A DNA stretch of 64,000 bases from Macrostomum lignano (Eukaryota). Position 1 is the first letter of the stretch. Each line of letters begins with the position of its first letter. The stretch covers positions 62,001 to 126,000 of the forward strand of contig NIVC01000852.1 in assembly GCA_002269645.1 (NCBI GenBank). The letters run 5' to 3'. Positions 47,001-64,000 of this stretch are shown here, one piece after another. The position numbers and the translations under genes were made by a program. The notes beneath the pieces were generated by a model. It was not told the origin of the DNA, searched no databases, and saw only the letters and a program-made list of their open reading frames with translations.

Positions 47001-50000
47001 GCGTAAATTATGGTAAAAATTCCTTTCAGGACAAGATTGACTTGCGGCTCGTAAACTCTAGGCGAGAGATGTTTAATTAGCAATGTCTCTTGCTACTTTG
47101 TGAGCTGTTGTACTCTGAGCACACAAGCTGGGCAAACACAAACAATCATAATGGCTTGCCAATGGAAAGCTACTGACATGATTTCTCTTGAAGTCCTGAG
47201 TAATTGAGTGGGAGCATGAGAAACTTTGTTCAAGTTATTGTTACATTGCAGGCTGCCGAAAAATGAATCATAAGTAAACCATCTACTCACAGAAAAGGAT
47301 TGTTTGCCCTTTGGTCGAACTTGCATAAGAGAAGAAGTACTGTAGCAGTACTTCATGGACTCACTTGAGTCCCCAGCTCAAACTCTGACGCGTGCCGCTC
47401 CTTGTACCGGAAAAACGTGCCGCTGTTTTGTGCATAGATGCCGATCTCCCGACCGCTCCATGAGACAACCGAGCCAGCTCAATCGCATACTCTCAGCTTC
47501 ATCAGCTCACATAGCAACAGACTCAGAGTCAAGCATGAAGTGGCAGCTCGCTCTCGGACTTCTGCTCTGCGCGGCTCTGGCCGCCGCCGTGCCCAGCCAG
47601 CAGGAGGAGGCCGAGACCACCTCGGCTCTGGAGGCCGTGGCCAACCTGGAAGAGTCCGGCCTGACGGAGGAGGGCTTCCAGCAGCTGGCCAAGAAGGGCA
47701 TCCGCATCAGGAAGGTGGTCCGCGTCATCAGGAACATCAAGAAGGTCGCCCACGCCATCGCCAACTGAAGATCTACAAGACAATGAATGACACAACGGAC
47801 CAGACTTTACTAGCTTTCCAACGATTTTCAAAAGGCCTAAAAAGCGCTATGTAATATGATAATATAAAGTTCTAATACCATCTGGAATTTGTCAACTAAG
47901 TACTCTAAAATACACGCGTAACAGGATCCTTCATTTATTAACATTTTTACTATCAATGTGTTGACTAATTTAACAAAAACCAGCGTACAGTCCTGTATAT
48001 GAGCAAAAACCGAGTGTGTTCGTATATAGTCTATAGCGGATCGTCTGTCTTAGCTTAGCATGCCATTTTGATCTCGACTTTAGCAGGAGTGACTTCAATT
48101 TCGGCAAGTCCACGGATGAAAAATTCTTAACCTATCGGCAGCAGTTTGTCTTTGGCCATCAGTTGAAACATTATTAACCTATCGGCAATTTGTCTATGGG
48201 CATCAGTTGAAACATTATTAACCTATCGGCAATTTGTCTATGGGCATCAGTTGAAACATTATTAACCTATCGGCAATTTGTCTATGGGCATCAGTTGAAA
48301 CATTATTAACCTATCGGCAATTTGTCTATGGGCATCAGTTGAAACATTATTAACCTATCGGCAATTTGTCTATGGGCATCAGTTGAAACATTATTAACCT
48401 ATCGGCAGTTTGTCTATGGGCATCAGTTGAAACATTATTAACCTATCGGCAATTTGTCTATGGGCATCAGTTGAAACATTATTAACCTATCGGCAATTTG
48501 TCTATGGGCATCAGTTGAAACATTATTAACCTATCGGCAATTTGTCTATGGGCATCAGTTGAAACATTATTAACCTATCGGCAGTTTGTCTATGGGCATC
48601 AGTTGAAACATTATTAACCTATCGGCAATTTGTCTATGGCCATCAGTTGAAACATTATTAACCTATCGGCAGTTTGTCTATGGGCATCAGTTGAAACATT
48701 ATTAACCTATCGGCAGTTTGTCTATGGCCATCAGCTGAAGCGTGTGCATTAAACTTTGGCGACACAAGTGAACACTGATGCCGAACAGCGTATGTCTGAG
48801 CAGCGAGCGATAACATTCAAATCTATTACTTCTCATGCTGCGTTTCATTTATGTGTGTACAGAAGTTCAGCCTAATATTTTAACTTTAAACTTTGAAATT
48901 TATTTACAGTTAGCTAAGTTTAACAGTCATTTTTTCAACTTTTTTAATCCGTACTTTGTTAAAGTGCAATGAATTCAAACGTCAGTTTAACTTGAAAGGG
49001 ATCTTAACTCTCATTCCTAGATAAACCTTGAATATTCACAGTTTAACTTGGAATTTAACCAGGAATCGGCTTGAATTTTTTAAGCGGGATATCGCTGCAG
49101 GATCGAGAACGCAGTGACAGGGAGACTGTTTTATGTTTTATCTTCAATTCAAACCAGAGCGGTGTGAATATGCAATGAATTATATACCAAGGACGACTTA
49201 AGTAGAAGGACGGGAAACCTCGTTTCTTAGAATTTTTTTGAAGGCACTTTTTTCCGAAAAAATACACTGCGGAGATAGGAAATTTTCATTTTTTCAGCAC
49301 AAAAATTGCTATAACTTTTGATAGGAGGCAGATCCAGTGTTGATCTTTTGATATGTTGTGCCTTTTTTATTGCTCTATCGATATTTATAAAGCTTTCCGT
49401 TCAGAAAATTAGGATTCTATGTTAATTTTTTATTCTACGTATATTTTCATGTGTCTTGTGCTTGAAATACATTAGAATGCCACGGCTTGGCTCTTTGATT
49501 TTATGAGTCTATTTTATCCTTCTTACCTGACTGTATAGCAAATAGTCGTAACATAGATGATAAAATAGATTCATAAAACCAAATATTGGAGCTGTGTCAT
49601 GCCTTTTTGTGATTTTTAGATGCAGGAAATATACGTAGAATAAAAAATTAACATAGAATCCTAATTTTCTGAACGGAAAGCTTTATAAATATCGATAGAG
49701 CAATAAAAAAGGCACAACATATCAAAAGATCAACACTGGATCTGCCTCCTATCAAAAGTTATAGCAATTTTTGTGCTGAAAAAATGAAAATTTCCTATCT
49801 CCGCAGTGTATTTTTTCGGGAAAAAGTGCCTTCAAAAATTTTCTAAGAAACGAGGTTTCCCGTCCTTCTACTTAAGTCGTCCTTGTTATATACATGCAGG
49901 ATTCTTCTGGTTGAGAGTCAGACCAAAATTTCACGCAGTTAGATCTACTTTATTCTTTAGTTTATTTGGTCGGCCTCGAACCATCCACCATCAACATTAT

Positions 50001-53000
50001 GTAATTCCGCATTCATTCCACCATCGCAACAGCGCCTGATATCCGTGGACGACAGCTCGCCTCAACCGCAGCTGAAGCTCTGGAGCCTCGAGTCCCGATC
50101 GATTCTCGCCATGGTTCGACCGTCTGCAGCTGTTGTCTGCGACGTCACTGTGAGCCCCGGCGTCGACGGCGCGTTCGTGACGGTCGGGCGCGGCCACATC
50201 GCCTGGTGGCGTCATTGGGATCGCGATGGCGATGGTAAGAAACAGCTGCAGCTGGTCCGAGAGGGTGACGTGACTGCCCTGTCGGCGAGGTACGTGGTTA
50301 GCGCGGTCTACTGCACCGATGGCCTGCTGGTCACTGGCGACTCAAGCGGAGGAGTTGCCGTGTGGGATGACGCCGATCCGGAGAACGAGAGTAGCGGCTG
50401 TCGAATAATACGACTGGGAAGCCAGCTGCATCAGGTGTGAAGCATTTAATTTTCGGTTTTGTATTTATATTTTAGGAGTTTATATGCTTCTATATTAGAC
50501 AGAAGACATGAGCCTTTTTACAATAAAAGCAATGTTCACAATTGTTGAGCAGCCGAAGAAACTTCTACTGAGTGACCGGTGGTCCGAGGAGTAAGGAACT
50601 CATAAGAAGCTCGAAGTAGGGAATTCGAGCAGTGCTCAATCCTGATGTGTTCCTTATTACCAGTCCTCAACTGTAATCAAGGAACAATCACTTCTAGCTA
50701 CTTGCTAGGCAACCCAGTTATCAGATAAAGGTATCACTTACCTTTAGTTGTATCCTCCGTTGAGTACTCTTTTTAGATCTCGCTGTAGGTCTAGTCACCA
50801 GTAGTTCTGGTCTCAGATGATCCGTAGATCAGGCGCCTTGTCTCTTCTTTGGTTCTGGTCCTGGTTCTTCTTGGACTTTCGATGAAGTTCCTTCCGGCCG
50901 GTATCTGCAGTCAGGACCAATCAGAGGCCTCGTATCAACAATGGGTACCCTGCGCCGAACAGCGGTTCGAGTTAAGCCTCCTTCTTCTAGCAGTGCCTCT
51001 ATGCACTCTAGGTATAGCTCCGGAAACCACTGATAGTCTTCTAAGATCTATCAGTGGCAGTCCTTCTGGAGACTGCAACCAGTAGAGTCTAAACAGACTC
51101 AAGAGTCTCAACAGACTCAACTAAACTCAAGTAACACTAGACTTGAGCGAGACGTCTCTAACACAACGGGCGCAAATAAGGAAGGCTTACCGCAACAACT
51201 CGACCGAGTCTCGATTGACTTGGTGATCAGGAAGTCCTCCTAAGGCTTCCTCTTCGGAGCTTCTCCTCTCGTCGGGAGTTGGCTCCTGGTCCGCTTCGGA
51301 CCGCTTGTATTTATAGGCGAATTTGCAGTCCAAAATAGCATTACAACTCATGTGTTGCGCTAAAAGGGTAACATAACTTATTGCGTATTATACAGTAACA
51401 TGGTTAATTGTTAAGTTTCAGTTGCGCATGCGTGCACTTACCTACTTACAGTAGCATCCTATGATTAACTTCTTTTACCTTTTTTACGGGAGGTAGAACA
51501 CTCTACAATCCGTTGACCCGGATACGAACGAAGGCACACGCTCCCACAGGATGTACATCGGCCCAGACTATCTCATAATCGGGCAGTGTACTCGTCATAC
51601 GCACTCGGCCTTTGTGTTTGGCCCTCAATACTGTGGACTATAAGGGAATTTTCCTAGGACTTGGACAGGCTCAAAGACGGAAAATACAATCTACAGCTAC
51701 TATTACCTGCCTATCTGAACAGGGTCCCGTGTTCACCTTACTGGAGCTCCTATTCAATGACCAGAACTGGATTCTCAGCGGCGGTCGCGATGGGCGCCTG
51801 TTAGTCTGGCGCGCATCCGACATGCCACCAACAATGAGTCCTGATGAAAATCGCCAAGAAACTGGCTCGTCAACTTCGTTAAAAAAACAAAATGAATCGT
51901 CAGCCGTGAGCAGTCTGGCCCTGCCAGAGGAAGCTGCAGGCAACGCCGGAATTCGTTGCGTCTGCGCCTGCAAGACTGCTGGTGGCGCAGAAAAAGACGC
52001 TGCCGATAACGCAAGTCAGCAGGACCAGGACATTGGCGGCATTCTGCTGGCGCTTGGCACCACAACCAATGCCATCTTTCTGTGCCGTCTCCCAGCGCCA
52101 GGAGCACGTGAAACCGAAGTAACTTCTGGAGACGACTCAGAGCATACTCCGGAGAACCCTCTGGCGGAGGCGCAGCTGCTTCCAGATCCACTGACTGCCG
52201 GGCACTACGATCGGCTGCGCAGCCTCGGCGGCCTGACCAGCCACCCGTCTGTCTTCGTCACGGCCGGCTACGACAGCCAGGTGCGAATGTACAATGCCGA
52301 GTCCCACCGGTGTCTGCACACTGCCGTTCTACCGGTAAGTGCTGAGCAGCTTTAACTTCTTTATTATTGATTGTAATCAGTGTCCAAGACTTACTGGGAC
52401 TTCCTTCCTTCCTTCCTTCCTTCCTTCCTTCCTTCCTTCCTTCCTTCCTTCCTTCCTTCCTTCCTTCCTTCCTTCCTCCTTCCTTCCTTCCTCCCTTCCT
52501 TCCTTCCTACCTTCCTTCCTTCCTTCCTCCCTTCCTTTCTTCCTTCCTTCCTTCCTTCCTTCCTTCCTTCCTTCCTTCCTTCCTTCCTTCCTTCCTTCCT
52601 TCCTTCCTTCCTTCCTTCCTTCCTTCCTTCCTTCCTTCCTTCCTTCCTTCCTTCCTTCCTTCCTTCCTTCCTTCCTTCCTTCCTTCCTTCCTTCCTTCCT
52701 TCCTTCCTTCCTTCCTTCCTTCCTTCCTTCCTTCCTTCCTTCCTTCCTTCCTTCCTTCCTTCCTTCCTTCCTTCCTTCCTTCCTTCCTCCCTACCTTCCT
52801 TCCTTCCTTCCTTCCTTCCTTCCTTCCTTCCTTCCTTCCTTCCTTCCTTCCTTCCTTCCTTCCTTCCTTCCTTCCTCCCTTCCTTCCTTCCTACCTTCCT
52901 TCCTCCCTTCCTTCCTTCCTTCCTTCCTTCCTCCCTTCCTTCCTTCCTACCTTCCTTCCTCCCTTCCTTCCTTCCTTCCTTCCTTCCTTCCTTCCTTCCT

Positions 53001-56000
53001 TCCTTCCTTCCTTCCTCCCTTCCTTCCTTCCTTCCTTCCTTCCTTCCTTCCTTCCTTCCTTCCTTCCTTCCTTCCTTCCTTCCTTCCTTCCTTCCTTCCT
53101 TCCTTCCTTCCTTCCTTCCTTCCTTCCTTCCTTCCTTCCTTCCTTCCTTCCTTCCTTCCTTCCTTCCTTCCTTCAATTCATCCTAAAATGGAACCCACCA
53201 AAACCTACTGTATTTTCTGTTTGTGTGGCCGGCCTCAGCACTATTACACGATCTTATCTTCAGAAAAAGTGCATCTCTAGCGTTCTGTGGCACAGCAGCG
53301 GAACGCTGATCCTGGGAACTAGAACTGGTCAGCTGATCATTCTGCAGCGGTCCGGCTCCGTTCTGTGCCAGGTTTTCAAACGGAGGACGGCCAGACACAA
53401 AATCACTGCAATCGCAACCGCTCCCTGTGAGTTTCAACTTGGCGTTGATGTTTCCTTTGTTTGAAGCTTTGTAAGCAGCTTATCGGCTGAAGAGGAGGCA
53501 GACCCAATGTTCATATTTGTAAAGCTTTCTGCTTATAAAATTAGGATTGTACGGGTAGGTTTAACTTTTTTGTCCAACGTACATATTTTGTGACTAAAAA
53601 TAATAAAAATGACACAATTTAATTCATTCGTATTATGAATCTTTTTATTCATTATTAGCTTATTGATTATGTTACTAAATTAATTTTTAACTGCAATAGT
53701 TCAAGCATTCAGCCAAATGAGACAACACTGACTAGGCTAAGTTTTTTGTCATAAATATGGTCTATAATAGCCCGATTAAAACATTATATTCTACGTTACC
53801 CTCGTATGAAGGCTCACTACTGATGAGTGTGAAGACTATAAAATTATCATTTATTATTAGTTTTAAAATTTGAACATTGGATCTGCCTCCTATCAAAAGT
53901 AATTAAAAATTTTTGCTGAAAAATGAAAATCTCCATTCTCCAAAAACGTATTTCGAGCGTATTTGGTAAAAACTGCCTCCTAAAATTTTATATAAACAAT
54001 CCGCCCCTTCAAATTTTGACATTGACAACTGCAAAATTCTATAATAATGTTATACTAACCAACAGGGGTCGTAGCCTAGCGATTAGAGCGATGGACTCAC
54101 GACTTGAAGGTCGGGTGTTCGATTCCCGATCCCACTGAGAACAATCTGTGTCCTTGAGCAAGACACTTAACTCTGCATTGCTTCAGTTCACCCAGCTGTA
54201 AAATGGGTGCCAGCATTAGCTGGGGCAATTGAGGCTGTGTGGCGACCCCCCAGTCCTTGGACTGAACAGCCGTACGCAGCCTTCAGATGCGCCGCGCAAT
54301 TGCTGCGGCAGAGCTGTCGGTTGCACATCTACCTATTAGGGCAGGTTTAATCAATTATTATTATTTAATAACCCACAGAAGTGAATCCTGACTACCCTAC
54401 AGCTTTTGACAATTTCTTAAGTCACATTAATTGACCAGACGAAGTAGATCAATCGAAAAACGCACTTGCTTGTTGAAGAGTGCATAAACTGAGTGGATGA
54501 AAAGTTTGCTTTTCCCACTCCAGCCGGCGAGATGGTTGCCGTTGGAGACGCCCGCGGCAGGATCTACTTTATCGAGCAGCGCAGGCATCAGCCTCAGCTG
54601 TCAGCTTCTCTGACGCGGCCAACTTCTACGGAGCAGGACAGGTCCGATGCTCCACAGTCATCGGCTGCCGAGCTTCGCAGCAGCTCCTGGCTCGTCGTTG
54701 GTGAGATTTGCGTCCTCCGTCGGCCGTCGAGGCCATCGACTTTGCCAGCGACCGATTCGAGGGCTCCCTGCTGCTGCGTGCCAGCAACCGTATCGCCGAG
54801 CTGGCTTTCTGTGAGCTTTAAAAGCTTTGTAAACTGTTGAAGAGTGACGAATGCTGTTGGCTTGCAGCCTAGTAGTCAGAGCGGGGATCGAACCCCAAGG
54901 TCGGGGGTTCGATTCCCGATCCCACTAAGAACAATTTGTGTCCTTGAGCAAGACACTGAACGCTGCATTGCTTCAGTTCACCCAGCTGTAAAATGGGCGT
55001 GCCAACATTAGCTGGGGTAATTGAGGCTGTGTGGCGACCCCCTTCCCAGTCCTTGGACTGAACAGCCGTACGCAACCTTCAGATGCGCCGCGCAATAGCT
55101 GCGGCTGAGCTGTCGGTTGCACATCTGGCCATGAGGGCAGGTGTAATCAATAATAATTATTATTACGAGCCATTTTTTTGTAAACTACGAAAATTCGATG
55201 TACATTCGACGCTGGGTCGGAGCGCTAACCCAACGGTTCTGTACAACTTCTTACAAACAATGACCCCTAAATACATTCGGAAGCGAGGGATGTTTAACAA
55301 ATAAAATCTTTACTTTATCAACATTCTTGAGGCCAAGTTTCTAAACGAAAACTGTTCTCCTTTCCAAAGTTCTGTTGGGACTAAGACTAAGACTATTGAG
55401 ATGGGTTGCAGCTAATGGAAGTTGAGTCAAATTGTCTGCCCCGACTTAAGTAATATGAAAATTATTGACTTTGACAGGCGACGCAACAAACTTTCACCTG
55501 ACCACTGGGGAGGAGCGATTTCGCAATGTGACCTGGAGTACCCATAGCTGCCTATGTTGCTACTATTCTGTTGGTAAGAGATCGAGCACTTTATAATCTG
55601 TGCGATAATTGGTGCTTGATCGGACTCGTTCAAATGGATTTATTACAGTAATATTCAATTCTCCGTATAGGTGTGTGGAACTCAGAGGTGGCCGCCAAGA
55701 GAAACATCACAGCAATGGACGCCTGTCCGTCACGGAACCTGCTGGCGGTGGGATTGGACACGGGCCAAGTGCTGCTGTACAGGATGCCCTGCATCAGTTC
55801 GAAAGTAAGCGGCATCTACGGCCATTAATGTTGGATGCTGTTGGGTAGAGTTGGTTGGTGTCCGGTTGATGTTGGATGCTGTTGGGTAGAATTGGTTGGT
55901 GTGCAGTTGATGTTGGATGCTGTTGGGTAGAATTGGTTGGTGTGCAGTTGATGTTGGATGGTGTTGGGTAGAATTGGTTGGTGTGCAGTTGATGTTGGAT

Positions 56001-57922
56001 GCTGTTGGGTAGAATTGGTTGGTGTGCAGTTGATGTTGGATGCTGTTGGGTAGAGATGGTTGGTGTGCAGTTGATGTTGGATGCTGTTGGGTAGAATTGG
56101 TTGGTGTGCAGTTGATGTTGGATGCTGTTGGGTAGAGATGGTTGGTGTGCAGTTGATGTTGGATGCTGTTGGGTAGAATTGGTTGGTGTGCAGTTGATGT
56201 TGGATGCTGTTGGGTAGAATTGGTTGGTGTGCAGTTGATGTTGGATGCTGTTGGGTAGAGATGGTTGGTGTGCAGTTGATGTTGGATGCTGTTGGGTAGA
56301 GTTGGTTGGTGTGCAGTTGATGTTGGATGCTGTTGGGTAGAATTGGTTGGTGTCCGGTTGATGTTGGATGGTGTTGGGTAGAGTTGGTTGGTGTCCAGTT
56401 GATGTTGGATGATGTTGGATAGATTTGATTGGTGTCCAGTTGATGTTGGATGCTGTTGGATAGATTTGATTGGTGTCCGGTTGATGTTGGATGCTGTTGG
56501 GTAGAGTTGGTTGGTGTCCGGTTGATGTTGGATGCTGTTGGGTAGAGTTGGTTGGTGTCCGGTTGATGTTGGATGCTGTTGGGTAGAGTTAGTTGGTGTG
56601 CAGTTGATGTTGGATGCTGTTGGGTAGAATTGGTTGGTGTGCAGTTGATGTTGGATGCTGTTGGGTAGAGTTGGTTGGTGTCCAGTTGATGTTGGATGCT
56701 GTTGGATAGATTTGATTGGTGTCCGGTTGATGTTGGATGCTGTTAGGTAGAGTTGGTTGGTGTCCGGTTGATGTTGGATGCTGTTGGGTAGAGTTGGTTG
56801 GTGTCCGGTTGATGTTGGATGCTGTTGGGTAGAGTTGGTTGGTGTGCAGTTGATGTTGGATGCTGTTGGGTAGAATTGGTTGGTGTCCGGTTGATGTTGG
56901 ATGGTGTTGGGTAGAGTTGGTTGGTGTCCAGTTGATGTTGGATGCTGTTGGATAGATTTGATTGGTGTCCAGTTGATGTTGGATGCTGTTGGATAGATTT
57001 GATTGGTGTCCGGTTGATGTTGGATGGTGTTGGGTAGAGTTGGTTGGTGTCCGGTTGATGTTGGATGCTGTTGGGTAGAGTTGGTTGGTGTCCGGTTGAT
57101 GTTGGATGGTGTTGGGTAGAGTTGGTTGGTGTCCGGTTGATGTTGGATGCTGTTGGGTAGAGTTGGTTGGTGTCCGGTTGATGTTGGATGCTGTTGGGTA
57201 GAGTTGGTTGGTGTCCGGTTGATGTTGGATGGTGTTGGGTAGAGTTGGTTGGTGTCCGGTTGATGTTGGATGCTGTTGGGTAGAGTTAGTTGGTGTGCAG
57301 TTGATGTTGGATGCTGTTGGGTAGAATTGGTTGGTGTCCGGTTGATGTTGGATGGTGTTGGGTAGAGTTGGTTGGTGTCCAGTTGATGTTGGATGCTGTT
57401 GGATAGATTTGATTGGTGTCCGGTTGATGTTGGATGCTGTTGGGTAGAGTTGGTTGGTGTCCGGTTGATGTTGGATGCTGTTGGGTAGAGTTGGTTGGTG
57501 TCCGGTTGATGGTTGATGCTTTTGGATTGAGTTGGTTGGTGTCCGGTTGATGGTTGATGCTGTTGGGAAGAGTTGGTTGGTGTCCGGTTGATGGTTGATG
57601 CTTTTGGATAGAGTTGGTTGGTGTCCGGTTGATGGTTGATGCTTTTGGGTAGAGTTGGTTGGTGTCCGGTTGATGGTTGATGCTTTTGGATAGAGTTGGT
57701 TGGTGTCCGGTTGATGTTGGATGCTGCTTGGCAGATCATAGCTGCAATGATTGATGCAAGCATGCGTGTCATCGCTACAAACGTTTTCGCTTTCCGCAGG
57801 CTCAATTTCGAGTGTTCCACGGTCCGTGCAAAATTTCCAGCTTGAAATTCCTATCAGAAGGCACTCGTCTCGTGGCTGTGGGCGGCTCAGAAGCCTGCAT
57901 AATGCAGTGGAATGTGCTGTGA
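41037..57922 (+). CDS. Echinoderm microtubule-associated protein-like (EML) HELP/WD40 protein with N-terminal EF-hand-like region, about 1170 aa
   Basis: Exons 41037-41163, 42969-43525, 43873-43970, 44065-44206, 44303-44736, 45491-45655, 46817-46979, 50033-50434, 51723-52334, 53264-53426, 54524-54810 (needs +1 nt), 55478-55573, 55671-55804 and 57800-57922. The HELP motif LELDWVYGYRGNDCRKNL...QRHYREHAGDVKSLCLHPDG and the C-terminus GVW...LLYRMPC...LVAVGGSEACIMQWNVL* are diagnostic of EML proteins. Confidence 0.88.
41378..41660 (+). mobile_element. tRNA-derived CORE-like SINE, copy 3
   Basis: Same family sequence. Confidence 0.85.
41850..42020. repeat. (GGTA)n microsatellite
   Basis: Direct reading. 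Confidence 0.9.
42805..42912. repeat. Degenerate telomere-like (CCCTAA/CCCTA) tract
   Basis: CCCTAACCCTACCCTAAAA...CCCTAACC. Confidence 0.6.
43530..43800. repeat. 27/28-bp minisatellite (TTCAGACTGCATGTCACTTACAGTCCG)
   Basis: About 10 copies filling an EML intron. Confidence 0.9.
44880..45300. repeat. (CTCCT)n / CT-rich repeat
   Basis: Direct reading; intronic. Confidence 0.95.
45690..46360. repeat. 12-bp GA-rich repeat (GAGAAGAGGGGA)
   Basis: Direct reading; intronic. Confidence 0.95.
47409..47445 (+). promoter_or_regulatory. Putative promoter block of peptide gene 1 (GGAAAAACGTGCCG plus TATA-like CATAGAT)
   Basis: Conserved upstream of the paralogue at 59883-59915 (GGAAAAACGTGCCG...CATAAAT). 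Confidence 0.5.
47535..47768 (+). CDS. 77-aa secreted prepropeptide, candidate antimicrobial/host-defence peptide precursor (nested in an EML intron)
   Basis: MKWQLALGLLLCAALAAA signal peptide, Glu-rich pro-region, KK site, then GIRIRKVVRVIRNIKKVAHAIAN*. High GC3 codon usage like the neighbouring exons; two paralogues in the window. Confidence 0.8.
   Translation: MKWQLALGLLLCAALAAAVPSQQEEAETTSALEAVANLEESGLTEEGFQQLAKKGIRIRKVVRVIRNIKKVAHAIAN
48130..48735. repeat. 44-bp minisatellite (TTAACCTATCGGCAATTTGTCTATGGGCATCAGTTGAAACATTA)
   Basis: About 13 contiguous copies with no spacers. Confidence 0.95.
49181..49892. mobile_element. About 710-bp foldback/MITE-like palindrome with about 265-bp near-perfect arms
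   Basis: 49181-49445 is the reverse complement of 49628-49892; TATATA at both ends; the arms are homologous to the interior of the 18104-18622 element. Confidence 0.85.
50543..51507 (-). mobile_element. Probable solo LTR / retroelement remnant (about 965 bp)
   Basis: TGT...ACA termini, a minus-strand CCTATAAATAC TATA-like box near 51310, and composition unlike the flanking intron. No clean TSD and no recognisable protein. Confidence 0.35.
52400..53175. repeat. (CCTT)n microsatellite
   Basis: Direct reading; intronic. Confidence 0.95.
53490..53990. mobile_element. Degenerate third member of the foldback/MITE family
   Basis: AGGAGGCAGACCCAATGTTC at about 53493 and its inverse GAACATTGGATCTGCCTCCT at about 53871-53890; both match the 18 kb and 49 kb elements. 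Confidence 0.6.
54065..54370 (+). mobile_element. tRNA-derived CORE-like SINE, copy 4
   Basis: Same family sequence. Confidence 0.85.
54859..55165 (+). mobile_element. tRNA-derived CORE-like SINE, copy 5
   Basis: Same family sequence with a diverged tRNA head. Confidence 0.85.
55830..57725. repeat. 41-bp minisatellite (GTTGATGTTGGATGCTGTTGGGTAGAGTTGGTTGGTGTCCG)
   Basis: About 45 copies in the last EML intron (55805-57799). Confidence 0.95.
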
Positions 57923-58488
57923 AACTGCAATCTGTGCCTTTTCTAATAAAATTTACGTTAAAACGCTTCCTTCCGTTAAATTTCTGAATTTTGACGCAAA
58001 CTGTGCACAAATCTATGCAAGCACCTGAGTTGCTAGCAAAGCTTCACGTAAAAAAGTAGCTCGTATACCTACGAGATGAAAAGCAAAAAGGTGCATGGTC
58101 ATGTTGGGTCGTATAGATGAACTTCTTGGATCATTTCTGGTTAGACATGGGTTGAATATCAATCAAGATACAAATTAGTGTTGCTACAAAGAAATTGGTA
58201 GGTAGTCTTAGAAGTCACACCGTCGAAAAACTGCTTTGAGAGATTAACGTAATAACACAATTGTACTCCATCTTATAGTGACTTTATACATTGACTTCCA
58301 GATTCAAAATTTTGACATAAACTTACGTTTGCTCTGATAGTTTTTACGCAGAACCGTCAGGTAACACAAAAACTGAGGCAAGGCAATCGCAATGAAGGTG
58401 AGGTAAACAATGAATTGTGTGAGAAAGTATCAATCACTCTTTGCCCAACACAAAAGTACAAACAAGTTCGTTGCCAAAGTCCAAGAAA

Positions 58489-58618
58489 GTCAATCGCAGA
58501 CTCTCAGGTTCATCAGCTCGCCCAGCAACAGACTCTGGCCAAGAAGGGCATCCGCATCAGGAAGATGGTCCGCGTCAACAGGAACATCAAGAAAGTCGCC
58601 CATGCCATGGCCAACTGA
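58489..58618 (+). pseudogene. Truncated paralogue of the 47535 peptide gene (signal and pro-region deleted)
   Basis: The 5'UTR-like TCAATCGCAGACTCTCAG..TTCATCAGC..CAACAGACTC joins directly to LAKKGIRIRKMVRVNRNIKKVAHAMAN*; no signal-peptide ATG. Confidence 0.75.
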
Positions 58619-59980
58619 AGACCCTCGGAAGTCTGACAGTTCGCTAAAACCTGAATGTGTCACAATACTTTCGAACCACGAGCTCCTTGGCTAAAATACA
58701 AGAGCGTAAATAAATAATATAACAAGTTGATTTCATTTCAGAGTTTATTTCGTGCGGCAATATCAGCTAATAGCTACTATATAGTAATATTATGCGATTA
58801 TAGTACTCGTAGTTTTCTCGTGGAAGTCAAAGTCTTTTTAAACTGTCGACATAATCATGACGTCATCATAATTACAAGAGGGCTGCGGGCGACATCGGTT
58901 CCACAACCAGCGCTGAGACTTTCTAATCGTCAGGGATGTACACTTGGCCTTGGGGGCTGGCGAAGTTTAATTCAGAAGTTCAGACATTTGGTTTGAATTT
59001 TGGGGCGCTTTCATTAGTTTCACTTTGCCGAAAAGCACTCTCTTTCACTAGGCCGAAAGTTCACATTTGCCGAAAAATCATTTTAGCAGCGTCCTTACTA
59101 TGGTCGAAAGGGGGTGTGAACTTAAGCCTCCAAAATGGAACCGCAAGCAGTGACGATTTCTCTGCACCAGTTTCTTTATTTTGACCTCAGTGTTACTCTG
59201 CTACCAAAGTGGCAGCACGATATGGTCACTCAGTTTTTTTGTATTGAATATTTTCGACATTTCTGACTTCATTTGGGGGTGAACTCTGATTGCTTATTAT
59301 TTTCATTGCATTTTCTGTCTCAGTCGGATGGACTTTTAAGTTATAGAGTGCTCGTATGTTTTTATGGCTCCTTTGAAAGCATGCAGATTTGCCTGGATTC
59401 CGATTCGTAGAATATGCATGGCTCTAAGATTCACTTTAATGTTATCATGTTAGTTTCGGCCTAGTGAAGGAAGATGCTTTCGGCGAAGTGAAATTTCGGC
59501 CTCGGCGCTACAGTGCCCATAAAAGCTGACAACATCCTATTGCGATAATAAATTTTCCAATGAATTGCGTGTATAACGTCCTTCTAATTTAGTTGTTAAT
59601 GTTACAATCCTATTGTAGAAAAAATTCTTTGTTTAACTTCTGCCTCAAACGTATTCGTTAATAAAGTAGTGCATACAACAACGCTTGGGCTGGAACTAAC
59701 TTTAGATAGGGCAAATAGTGAGACAGTGGCAGCTTCATCAAACAGTCTATTGAGTAGATTTTGAGCAAAGTTTACCTAGCTAAGATTGACACTGCTTGGC
59801 CATTAAATTGCTGTAAAGTGCAATAAAAGTCAAGCCCTTAACACGTGAAAGTGTCGAGGTCAAACAGAGCATTCCAAGCTCAGGAAAAACGTGCCGAATT
59901 TTGAGCATAAATGCAGACAATTTAGCCAGCTCAATCGCAGACTCTCAGCTTCATCAGCAGGCAGCCCAACAGACTCAATC

Positions 59981-60215
59981 ATGAAGTGGCAGCTCGCTCT
60001 CGGATTTCTGCTCTGCGCAGCCCTGGCCGCGGCCGCTCCCAACCAATAGCGACTCAAACCAGGAGGAGACTGAGAACTTGGCCGCTATGCGGGCCATGTC
60101 CGACGTGGACGCGTCCGCCCTGACAGGGGAGAGAGGCCTCTTCGGCATGGTGATCGGAACTGCCAAGGTTGTTGGCAAAATTGCCAAGGCTGTCAAGGCG
60201 GCGCGCAATTCTTGA
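59981..60215 (+). pseudogene. Third peptide precursor paralogue with a 1-bp frameshift (pseudogene or sequencing error)
   Basis: 235 nt versus 234 nt for copy 1. Removing one C at 60038-60040 gives MKWQLALGFLLCAALAAAAPTNSDSNQEETENLAAMRAMSDVDASALTGER-GLFGMVIGTAKVVGKIAKAVKAARNS*. Confidence 0.75.
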
Positions 60216-60711
60216 GAGAACTTTTGAGGGATGAGTTTTCCCGGACTGTGTTTTTTCGAATGCGGTTCTTTTCGGGCAAAGTACAAAATAAACAACAGTT
60301 CTGCCTACTTATTGGTCAATAGTAGTAGTAGAGTATTACGCACAGGTATGGAAATTTCTGGGAATAGTTAGAGCTTCAAATGATTGCTAGTTGTTCAAAA
60401 GTTGAATTAGAAGAAAAAATCAAACGGTCTCTATATAGAAAATCTGTTTAACAATCTTCATTCAGAAATATATTTACATTTTTACAAAAAAATTGAAAAG
60501 CCTGCAGTGGAAAATGCAGATTGTCTTGGCTTGCTTTTATTGCCTTTCTAAGCTGGATGTAAAGAACGGGCCAAAAAGTTTCAATTAGGAAAATTTCTCC
60601 AATTAAGAAATCTGTGGTTAAATTTGTAGATGCATGCGAAATTGAGCAAATCAGTGACATCACAGGTGTCAGCAGTAGGTACTTTGTACAGTTTTGGTTA
60701 ACCTTCCTGGT

Positions 60712-61610
60712 TGGAATCTTTCCGGTTGGAATCCTTCCAGTTGGAATCCTTCCGGTTGGAATCCTTATGGTTGGAATCCCTCCGGTTGAAATCCTTCCAG
60801 TTGGAATCCTTCCGGTTGGAATCCTTCCAGTTGGAATCCTTCCGGTTGGAATCCTTCCAGTTGGAATCCTTCCGGTTGGAATCCTTCCAGTTGGAATCCT
60901 TCCAGTTGGAATCCTTCCGGTTGGAATCCTTCCGGTTGGAATCCTTCCGGTTGGAATCCTTCCAGTTGGAATCCTTCCAGTTGGAATCCTTCCGGTTGAA
61001 ATCCTTCCGGTTGGAATCCTTCCGGTTGGAATCCTTCCGGTTGGAATCTTTCCGGTTGGAATCCTTCCAGTTGGAATCCTTCCAGTTGGAATCCTTCCGG
61101 TTGGAATCCTTCCGGTTGGAATCCTTCCGGTTGGAATCCTTCCAGTTGGAATCCTTCCAGTTGGAATCCTTCCGGTTGGAATCCTTCCGGTTGGAATCCT
61201 TCCGGTTGGAATCTTTCCGGTTGGAATCCTTCCAGTTGGAATCCTTCCAGTTGGAATCCTTCCAGTTGGAATCCTTCCGGTTGGAATCCTTCCGGTTGGA
61301 ATCCTTCCAGTTGGAATCCTTCCAGTTGGAATCCTTCCGGTTGAAATCCTTCCAGTTGGAATCCTTCCGGTTGGAATCCTTCTAGTTGGAATCCTTCCGG
61401 TTGGAATCCTTCCGGTTGGAATCCTTCCAGTTGGAATCCTTCCAGTTGGAATCCTTCCGGTTGAAATCCTTCCAGTTGGAATCCTTCCGGTTGGAATCCT
61501 TCTAGTTGGAATCCTTCCGGTTGGAATCCTTCCGGTTGGAATCCTTCCGGTTGAAATCCTTCCGGTTGGAATCCTTCCGGTTGGAATCCTTCCGGTTGGA
61601 ATCCTTCCGG
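60712..61610. repeat. 15-bp minisatellite (TTCCGGTTGGAATCC)
   Basis: About 60 copies, ending about 30 bp from the kinase stop codon. Confidence 0.95.
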
Positions 61611-61642
61611 GTGGCAACATTCCCGGTTTGAGAATGATAGAA

Positions 61643-63408
<1,766 letters not shown>

Positions 63409-63704
63409 AGATAGGGTTTTGTCACGCAGTCAAAGGAGGGTTGAATTTGCTATAAACTGCTCCAGACAGTTTTGTCAGCTTTATACGTAGAGCCCCACAC
63501 CAATCCAGGTAGATGTGGGCCTCAAGATGCAATCTAAATTCAGAATTTCGTCATAAACGCCAGCCTTTTTTAGACCAGACTCTCGCGTCATCAAAAAGCA
63601 CCGTTGTTTTTTTTGCAATGATATCACAGGTGTACTTTATTGCCTCGCGGGCTATGATGGCGAAGAAGCTGCGGGTTCTTACTCGGACTCTGGCCTCAAG
63701 TGCC

Positions 63705-63752
63705 CTCTCGCCCTCTCGCCCTCTCGCCCTCTCGCCCTCTCGCCCTCTCGCC
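63705..63752. repeat. 8-bp repeat (CCCTCTCG)n
   Basis: Direct reading. Confidence 0.85.
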
Positions 63753-64000
63753 GCTGCTTCCAGCTGGACAATAGAAAGAATAAATAGATAGCAGTTTAGT
63801 CACCTGACCATGCAGGTTGCTCATGCAGAGAGCGGGTGTTTGCCCTGCCACTGAAAATGGCTCTCTCCCCTCGATCTTGTAAATCAAGTCCTGTGACAAG
63901 CAGAGCAAAAATCTTTTGTGCAACGGGAGGAACGTTTTTTTATCACATCTCCACCATGCTACTTTAAGTGGCAGTACGTAAAAATAACTTTATTCTATGA

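Follow-up and report, generated by a model that had tools for sequence, protein, structure and literature searches.

A frame-disrupted paralog in a family of small secreted peptide precursors of Macrostomum lignano

This report concerns a short element in the flatworm Macrostomum lignano, found at positions 59981-60215 (plus strand) of a 64,000-nucleotide (nt) stretch of contig NIVC01000852.1 (assembly GCA_002269645.1). We refer to this whole stretch as the window. The element, which we call copy 3, is very probably a pseudogene, a frame-disrupted paralog within an M. lignano-restricted family of small secreted peptide precursors that we call the MKWQLALG family after the residues with which its members begin. 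A 13-nt insertion brings both a TAG stop codon and a frameshift, and copy 3 is for that reason placed with the pseudogene rather than the working members of the family. It has no uninterrupted open reading frame (ORF) from signal to tail (TAG at 60047-60049, followed by a +1 shift). A search of the 64-kb window with tblastn finds exactly three family elements, copies 1, 2 and 3, all on the plus strand. A first-pass annotation made from the letters of the window had proposed a third precursor paralog at this position, invisible to the ORF track, and alignment to copy 1, which is intact, confirms it.

Copy 3 and its inactivating insertion

The ATG of copy 3 lies at 59981, and frame 0 encodes MKWQLALGFLLCAALAAAAPNQ, 22 codons, before reaching the TAG. 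The +1 frame stays open over 60039-60212 (PTNSDSNQEETENLAAMRAMSDVDASALTGERGLFGMVIGTAKVVGKIAKAVKAARNS, 58 codons), with a TGA at 60213-60215, and its C-terminal end reads ...LTGER followed by the 26-residue sequence GLFGMVIGTAKVVGKIAKAVKAARNS (the 26-mer), whose first glycine codon is at 60135. The stop at 60047 and the open downstream frame ending in ER plus the 26-mer (60135-60212) had both been reported in the first-pass annotation, and the sequence bears them out. On the plus strand, the element can be divided into three parts. The ATG, signal peptide and first propiece residues remain in the ancestral frame (MKWQLALGFLLCAALAAAAPNQ, 59981-60046) and stay in register with the paralogs through CCC-AAC-CAA. 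The remaining acidic propiece, which aligns with that of the family, has moved to the +1 frame with respect to the ATG (QEETENLAAMRAMSDVDASALTGER, 60060-60134). The last part is the putative mature peptide GLFGMVIGTAKVVGKIAKAVKAARNS with its TGA (60135-60215). A candidate polyadenylation signal, AATAAA, lies 72 nt past the stop (60287-60292, plus strand).

Copy 3 aligns with copy 1 by blastn with E = 5e-38. At the protein level, the signal peptides are identical at 19 of 22 positions (86%, E = 8e-9), and the +1 frame of copy 3 matches copy 1 at 48.7% identity (E = 5e-14). These alignments exclude a chance match and make copy 3 a genuine paralog. The family-type signal peptide is present in frame 0 as MKWQLALGFLLCAALAAAAP, with L9F as the sole departure, and an acidic propiece homologous to the family's ...QEE.AEAM..LEALSN(V/L)(D/E)ES..SEE... 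is found in copy 3 only as the +1 frame QEETENLAAMRAMSDVDASALTGE.

The nature of the lesion was established from an alignment of copy 3 with copy 1 and from a 10-gene alignment of coding sequences that includes seven further intact M. lignano family genes. The first-pass annotation had attributed the stop to one extra C in a CCC run. The CCC of copy 3 (60038-60040) corresponds, however, to a Pro codon that reads CCC in the intact paralogs (CCT in one) and has equal length everywhere. After this codon, the intact paralogs have AGC, ACC or TCA and then CAG (GCG in the genes of the P0005 type, BOX15_Mlig024774g1/g2), and copy 3 has CCC-AAC-CAA (PNQ), in register with the paralog PSQ or PTQ. The lesion is instead a 13-nt insertion, TAGCGACTCAAAC, at 60047-60059 on the plus strand, with a placement that is ambiguous by a few nt; it carries the TAG itself and shifts the frame by +1. 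It sits before the conserved CAGGAGGAG, splitting it from the upstream ...CCCAACCAA, and appears as a gap of 13 nt in every alignment to an intact paralog. With these 13 nt removed, copy 3 reads ...AAAAPNQQEETEN..., matching ...AAAVPSQQEEAET... in copy 1, and the precursor is 73 amino acids (aa) long. The first-pass annotation was correct that the ORF corrected by one base has the same length as copy 1 (77 aa each), but the match is a coincidence because the length without the insertion is 73 aa. The P0005-type genes carry an additional 6 nt at the same site, in frame, and the site thus tolerates in-frame length change in working genes.

The context of the insertion (CCCAAC CAAT AGCGACTCAA AC, 60038-60060) resembles part of the element's own 5' untranslated region (5'UTR) 70 nt upstream (CCCAAC AGACTCAA TC, 59965-59980). 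The insertion may be an imperfect templated copy of the 5'UTR, made by template switching, the resemblance having been judged by eye, without statistics.

Placed directly after codon 22, the insertion brings in the TAG and moves the rest of the gene to the +1 frame, and translation from the ATG would therefore end after the signal peptide and a further two or three residues. Because of the TAG and the frameshift, copy 3 as it stands cannot give the 26-mer from this ATG. Two ways around the stop were considered and rejected. A canonical intron would have to start at 59986, where the only GT between start codon and TAG lies, and would remove the signal peptide; readthrough of the stop codon would meet a second TGA in frame 0 eight codons later.

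A second locus, on contig NIVC01001632.1 of the same assembly (GCA_002269645.1; L002 hereafter), is collinear with window positions 51975-64000. Around copies 2 and 3, the two loci differ by 38 substitutions (1.4%) and seven indels of 2-28 nt over 2661 aligned bp, and are thus different genomic copies rather than one sequence assembled twice. They would be haplotypes or homeologs of the neopolyploid M. lignano genome. Copy 3 in L002 is 515/521 identical to that in the window, without gaps, and has the identical insertion and stop context (CCCAACCAATAG / CCCAACCAATAGCGACTC). At least two diverged genomic copies thus have the insertion, which rules out both an assembly artefact and a lesion private to one copy.

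Further evidence comes from a protein record for the kinase gene just downstream (61646-63408, minus strand), which is 98% identical to M. lignano BOX15_Mlig026669g1 and has a Pkinase / PK_Tyr_Ser-Thr domain. A 713-aa gene model found only in UniProt (P0012) has as its last exon an antisense translation of copy 3, which is wrongly added to the kinase. This terminal exon is identical to window positions 60121-59978 at 47 of 48 residues, without gaps and across the insertion site, and it carries the L002-type variant. We infer that P0012 derives from the older ML2 assembly. Its gap-free translation across the lesion site implies the same base count there. An assembly or homopolymer error behind the stop of copy 3 is very unlikely on these sequence comparisons, and the suggestion in the first-pass annotation of a homopolymer error in an intact gene does not hold: the CCC is not expanded, the 13-nt insertion with its TAG recurs gap-free in L002, and P0012 has the same number of bases. 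The M. lignano data hold three versions of the kinase protein (that of the window, P0011 = P0012, and P0013), which is consistent with a partly triplicated genome. An exact look-up of the P0013 version, directed at a third copy of the locus, returned no record, and neither did one of the 106-aa antisense ORF spanning copy 3, used as a handle to Logan and transcriptome contigs.

The first-pass annotation had offered a very recent loss as its other explanation. That there was a loss is upheld by the shared insertion, and for its recency there is only a bound: both genomic copies carry the identical insertion, and the loss is therefore older than their split. It can be called young because promoter, 5'UTR and AATAAA all remain intact, as does the downstream frame. 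From the sequences, the loss of copy 3 appears evolutionarily young, yet older than the 1.4% split. Within copy 3, the window and L002 differ by three substitutions in 235 nt (two non-synonymous, one synonymous), the same rate as in the 1.4% flanks: A>G at 60069 (T->A in the propiece), G8R in the 26-mer and a synonymous change, also in the 26-mer. This divergence looks neutral, as expected for a pseudogene, with counts too small for proof. The clean downstream frame, which the first-pass annotation had taken as telling, has little discriminating power. Only 14 of the 522 possible single substitutions in the 174-nt downstream segment create a stop, and the chance of seeing none is ~0.8 even at 5% divergence; indels would strike first, at roughly >=5% divergence.

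Two arguments for decay were considered and dropped. One drew on family-invariant residues. Across 15 conserved columns, intact members show 0-7 departures (3-7 in the divergent P0005, P0019 and P0021), and copy 3, with four, is no worse than divergent intact members. The other held that copy 3 had lost a dibasic site, and the closest intact paralog is likewise monobasic (E-K) there.

The MKWQLALG family and the putative 26-residue peptide

Members of the family share one layout: a near-invariant signal, MKWQLALGLLLCAALA(V/A)A.P, with its MKWQLALG start; an acidic propiece (...ALEALSNVDESSMSEE...); and, beyond a basic site, a cationic C-terminal tail that is hypervariable. Most members have KK as the processing site, against EK in the P0005 type and ER in copy 3. 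The genes lie on several contigs, often in pairs, and every family gene inspected on them is an uninterrupted single ORF. The tails span 7 to about 33 residues, and many end in Gly after a dibasic site. Examples include FVRVRVRLG, IFRVRVHIG, GFHVHFHG, WRIKSACKIFRRLLHLARKCYAKKG, WRRRRRFRWRKAIRVAGKVAKAVL, a 33-residue (L/M)PRVR repeat and, in copy 1, GIRIRKVVRVIRNIKKVAHAIAN. Short tails are strongly beta-amphipathic, with a hydrophobic moment (muH) at 170 degrees of 1.17 for FVRVRARIRLG, and the copy 1 tail is strongly alpha-amphipathic at its best (muH at 100 degrees of 0.82 in the best 18-residue window and 0.54 over the whole tail). A conserved signal and propiece combined with tails that are hypervariable in length and sequence is the opposite of the pattern seen in neuropeptide precursors.

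When copy 1 was used as a query, all 10 matches were M. lignano hypothetical proteins. A profile built from 11 members and searched exhaustively against 1.84 billion representative proteins returned 11 clusters, all from M. lignano except one Logan contig, and no GLF-type tail like that of copy 3 was found among them. A word-indexed search of 5.8 billion predicted proteins with the corrected copy 3 gave no match at E <= 10, although this search also missed the shared signal peptide. Pfam searches with copy 1, corrected copy 3, P0001 and P0005 gave only noise at E <= 10; a borderline match of P0001 to "Lock_Gag1-like" was rejected, as it stems from the internal duplication of that protein. Searches seeded with family members returned no trematode protein, and no helminth defence molecule (HDM) sequence was compared directly. 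A Protein Data Bank (PDB) sequence search with the 26-mer and copy 1 gave no significant match.

The Logan contig (L008; SRR31628392, 929 nt) holds a gene at 541-813 that begins MRWQLALG... and has the 33-residue (L/M)PRVR-repeat tail. It is the sole family member from outside the M. lignano assemblies, and through it the MKWQLALG family may extend beyond M. lignano. On contig L001, two identical P0005-type genes (9967-10206, minus, and 14312-14551, plus) are inverted head to head, 4.1 kb apart; the NCBI gene model fuses them into one 4.5-kb "gene" with a 127-aa product that includes translated 5'UTR.

Copy 1 (47535-47768, plus strand) is an intact 77-aa paralog with its tail GIRIRKVVRVIRNIKKVAHAIAN following KK. 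Copy 2 (58491-58618, plus strand) is a truncated paralog in which alignments show the 5'UTR joined straight to the tail, without ATG, signal peptide or propiece. The same stump architecture is found in L002, from around plus-strand coordinate 14711 downward. In copy 2, the window and L002 differ by six substitutions in 45 nt, against the 1.4% background. The L002 version encodes the copy 1 tail exactly (LAKKGIRIRKVVRVIRNIKKVAHAIAN), and replacements M, N and M are found in that of the window. This pattern points to gene conversion in one lineage, with copy 1 as donor, or to faster decay in the other. Intact copy 1 and its counterpart are both absent from the protein database, and small genes of this family are therefore under-annotated.

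The family also shares a promoter, which we inspected at 59842-59914 and 47370-47440 and upstream of genes in L001, L003-L005 and L008. An alignment of 11 family genes gives the order CACGTG or CACATG (in most), ~40 nt, CGGAAA(A/C)ACGTGCC, ~9 nt and GCATAAAT. Copy 3 has all three motifs on the plus strand: the E-box-like CACGTG at 59842-59847, with CACGTG or CACATG in the corresponding place in most paralogs; GGAAAAACGTGCCG at 59883-59896, which recurs exactly at 47409 before copy 1 and is identical in L002; and the TATA-like box GCATAAATGC at 59905-59914, placed by the promoter alignment 76 nt before the ATG. CGGAAA(A/C)ACGTGCC aligns in all M. lignano family loci examined, and the Logan contig has a close variant of the last two motifs, with AGGAAAAACGTGGCC in place of this one. 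A conserved 5'UTR block (CAATCGCAGACTCTCAGCTTCATCAGC..., 59932-59980, plus strand) is common to copy 1 (47480), copy 2 (58491) and the P0005-type genes in L001, and the subgroup UTR motif CAATCGCAGACTCTCAG is also present in copy 3. From TATA box to ATG, there are 97-103 nt in L004b, copy 1 and both P0005-type genes, as against 76 nt in copy 3, which is without ~21 nt between the TATA box and the 5'UTR. Two ACGTG-containing motifs before the TATA box suggest control by a factor of basic helix-loop-helix (bHLH) or basic leucine zipper (bZIP) type.

Before its inactivation, copy 3 would have encoded a 73-aa precursor that was cut after Glu-Arg to release a peptide of 26 residues, hydrophobic at its N-terminus and both cationic and helical in its C-terminal half. 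Cleavage at ER|G is a reasonable but unproven reading of the sequence. The 26-mer has a net charge of +5, which lies in the C-terminal half, residues 1-10 (GLFGMVIGTA) being hydrophobic and without charge. An AlphaFold2 (AF2) model from the single sequence predicts a helix over the whole 26-mer, with mean predicted local distance difference test (pLDDT) scores of 84-95 in 10-residue blocks. The charge and the predicted helix support the proposal of the first-pass annotation that the downstream frame encodes a cationic, helix-prone peptide. Its further claim, that the Lys residues line one helix face, holds for the four residues themselves and not for the peptide as a whole: Lys 11, 15, 18 and 21 fall at 280, 320, 260 and 200 degrees on a 100-degree wheel, within one 120-degree arc, but the muH of the full 26-mer is 0.27, a value reached by 19% of shuffles. 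The best 18-residue window of the 26-mer has a muH of 0.42, compared with 0.46 for the whole of magainin 2. At the DNA level, the C-terminal part VGKIAKAV shows homology to the P0005-type tail AGKVAKAV, and the E-R of copy 3 occupies the place of the P0005-type E-K; MAFFT gives an alternative register, with AKV of copy 3 against AKK of the family.

Known systems and competing explanations

A literature search found no papers that name or test the MKWQLALG family, and the nearest record is a row in a supplementary table. Irvine et al. 2023 (PLoS Pathog 19:e1011508, PMC10414684) list BOX15_Mlig024774g1/g2, the P0005-type genes, in their S5 File as group 142 of peptides resembling antimicrobial peptides (AMPs). 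The group was positive by 100% of the predictors used, in silico only, and its row is marked "Same genome", single-genome groups having been removed from the prioritised set (PMC10414684). The same study describes the flatworm AMP repertoire as undescribed, with flatworms lacking the lophotrochozoan AMP families that are usual elsewhere, among them big defensins, cysteine-stabilized alpha-beta (CS-alpha-beta) peptides and myticalins (Irvine et al. 2023, PMC10414684). Group 142 shares with copy 3 the MKWQLALG start, 19 of the first 21 signal residues, an acidic propiece and a cationic tail, and its tail end ...AGKVAKAVL is the closest relative of ...VGKIAKAVKAA in copy 3. Unlike copy 3, its genes are intact and have the tail WRRRRRFRWRKAIR(I/V)AGKVAKAVL, whereas copy 3 is interrupted and has the uncharged N-terminus GLFGMVIGTA. 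Literal peptide strings and Mlig gene identifiers gave nothing in full-text papers, and six family gene identifiers gave nothing in the supplements of two M. lignano expression papers.

The layout of these precursors has parallels elsewhere. Amphibian preprodermaseptins (the dermaseptin superfamily, with aurein, maculatin and caerin) likewise combine a conserved signal and acidic propiece with a basic site and a hypervariable cationic helical peptide. Amphibian skin peptide genes form multigene families with frequent pseudogenes, and the GLFG N-terminus of copy 3 resembles those of maculatin and the aureins. The amphibian precursors differ in having a Lys-Arg site and an intron, as opposed to KK, EK or ER and an apparently single exon in Macrostomum. 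No homology to the preprodermaseptin signal or propiece was detected (noise only in Pfam, no PDB match and only Macrostomum in the profile searches), and the likeness is convergent. Hydra arminins are also taxon-restricted and consist of a signal, an anionic N-terminal propiece and a highly cationic C-terminal peptide, the propiece neutralizing the cationic tail. The Macrostomum family shares this domain order, taxon restriction and propiece logic, with no sequence similarity in any search. Arminin tails are longer (about 31 aa) and experimentally bactericidal. In the myticalins of Mytilus, the mature peptide comes straight after the signal peptide and the anionic extension is C-terminal. Otherwise, myticalins are alike: they are lophotrochozoan and multigenic, and their linear cationic peptides are hypervariable while the signal peptide is conserved (PMC5577615). 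The polarity of the 26-mer from copy 3 is melittin-like, not magainin-like, and its sequence is unrelated to melittin. In prepromelittin, a signal and an acidic propiece precede a peptide of 26 residues that is hydrophobic and without charge in its N-terminal part and basic in its C-terminal part; dipeptidyl peptidase removes the propiece step by step, and not at a basic site.

Judging from the contrast between the conserved signal and propiece and the hypervariable cationic tail, the MKWQLALG family most likely encodes membrane-active host-defence or toxin peptides. For the copy 3 peptide, family architecture and the published in-silico prediction for two paralogs make an antimicrobial role plausible. 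More tentatively, and as a reading to which we give somewhat less than even chances, the MKWQLALG genes would form a lineage-specific host-defence or toxin arsenal of a free-living flatworm, a birth-and-death family in which one cassette carries diverse tails, with copy 3 a freshly dead, melittin-like member whose intact allele may survive in a third genome copy or in wild worms. On this same joint reading, the arsenal would include beta-amphipathic FVRVRVRL-amide, His-rich GFHVHFH-amide, Cys-containing 25-mers and helical 23-26-mers. Several points weigh against the main reading, that of copy 3 as a pseudogene whose peptide belonged to such a family. Taken as a whole, the 26-mer is no more amphipathic than expected by chance, and the proposed Glu-Arg cleavage has no basic residue upstream. 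Copy 3 departs from the family at 4/15 conserved columns and, apart from the insertion, shows no decay. A third version of the locus exists (that with the P0013-type kinase), an intact copy 3 is possible elsewhere in the genome or in other strains, and the available sequences probably derive from one inbred line.

Three explanations compete with a fixed loss of copy 3. That it is intact, with a stop created by a homopolymer slip in CCC during sequencing or assembly, is hardly credible. In its favour, homopolymer errors do occur in long-read assemblies, promoter and 5'UTR are undamaged and the downstream frame stays open for 58 codons, but the extra sequence is 13 nt of complex composition rather than one base, the CCC is as long as in intact paralogs, the diverged L002 is identical here and the P0012 gene model implies the same; in addition, no protein with the copy 3 tail appears among the 5.8 billion predicted proteins (a word search of low apparent sensitivity). 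We regard a programmed +1 shift at CAA-TAG-C, with the T skipped, as equally improbable. It would yield ...AAAAPNQ-SDSNQEETEN... and a full 77-aa secreted precursor, restoring the family frame exactly, like antizyme-type or Euplotes-type sites, and the stop-plus-shift arrangement is kept in both genomic copies. Such conservation across 1.4% divergence is expected under neutrality anyway, however, the other family members lack such a site, no stimulatory element was found, and we know of no report of frequent +1 recoding in flatworms. A loss that is polymorphic or limited to some genome copies, with an intact GLF-type gene in a third homeolog, in wild populations or in a sister species, is unlikely, though clearly less so than the other two. 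Three kinase versions are known against two loci inspected, copy 3 is almost without decay beyond its insertion, and the family is under-annotated, copy 1 and its counterpart being missing from the protein database. On the other side, both inspected genomic copies have the lesion, and neither the word search nor the 11 profile-search clusters revealed a GLF-type tail.

A different kind of alternative accepts that copy 3 is dead and assigns the family another function, as amidated signalling peptides (FVRVRVRL-NH2, GFHVHFH-NH2) or as fast-evolving peptides of reproductive or secretory glands. This is the most serious of the rivals, and we think it has perhaps one chance in four. A Gly end after a dibasic site, found in many members, is a classical amidation signature, and reproduction-related genes are described as fast-evolving in Macrostomum literature. 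Neuropeptide families, however, conserve the mature peptide and vary the propiece, the reverse of what is seen here. The spread of tail lengths from 7 to about 33 residues, the high positive charge and the alpha- or beta-amphipathicity (muH of 0.82 at 100 degrees and 1.17 at 170 degrees) also speak against it, as do the two members scored 100% by AMP predictors.

Other features of the window and significance

Roughly a third of the 64-kb window consists of tandem-repeat arrays, about 30 in number. They include a 41-nt unit repeated 46 times (55828-57731), a 15-nt unit repeated 61 times (60702-61614), a 9-nt unit repeated 155 times (27072-28468), a 40-nt unit repeated 35 times (20810-22209) and (ACAG)n at 62944-63269. 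The copy number of the 41-nt and 15-nt arrays differs between the window and L002. The arrays yield many long spurious ORFs in all frames, for example one of 696 aa at 55730-57820. Elsewhere on the plus strand, an ORF at 33578-34621 has a DUF4485 domain (E = 1.5e-18), and another at 51612-52352 has weak WD40 / beta-propeller matches; both are probably exons of neighbouring genes.

Taken alone, copy 3 matters little: it is, on our reading, a pseudogene, with no hidden intact gene behind it. Its value is as a pointer. The window holds intact, truncated and frameshifted members of a Macrostomum-restricted family that has the hallmarks of diversifying defence peptides and a shared promoter, and of which software had already flagged two members as AMP-like (Irvine et al. 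2023). M. lignano is described as tractable for transgenesis and transparent (EvoDevo 2020), and the MKWQLALG family is therefore open to direct testing. Dead copies such as copy 3 supply further tails that can be synthesized as natural sequence variants.

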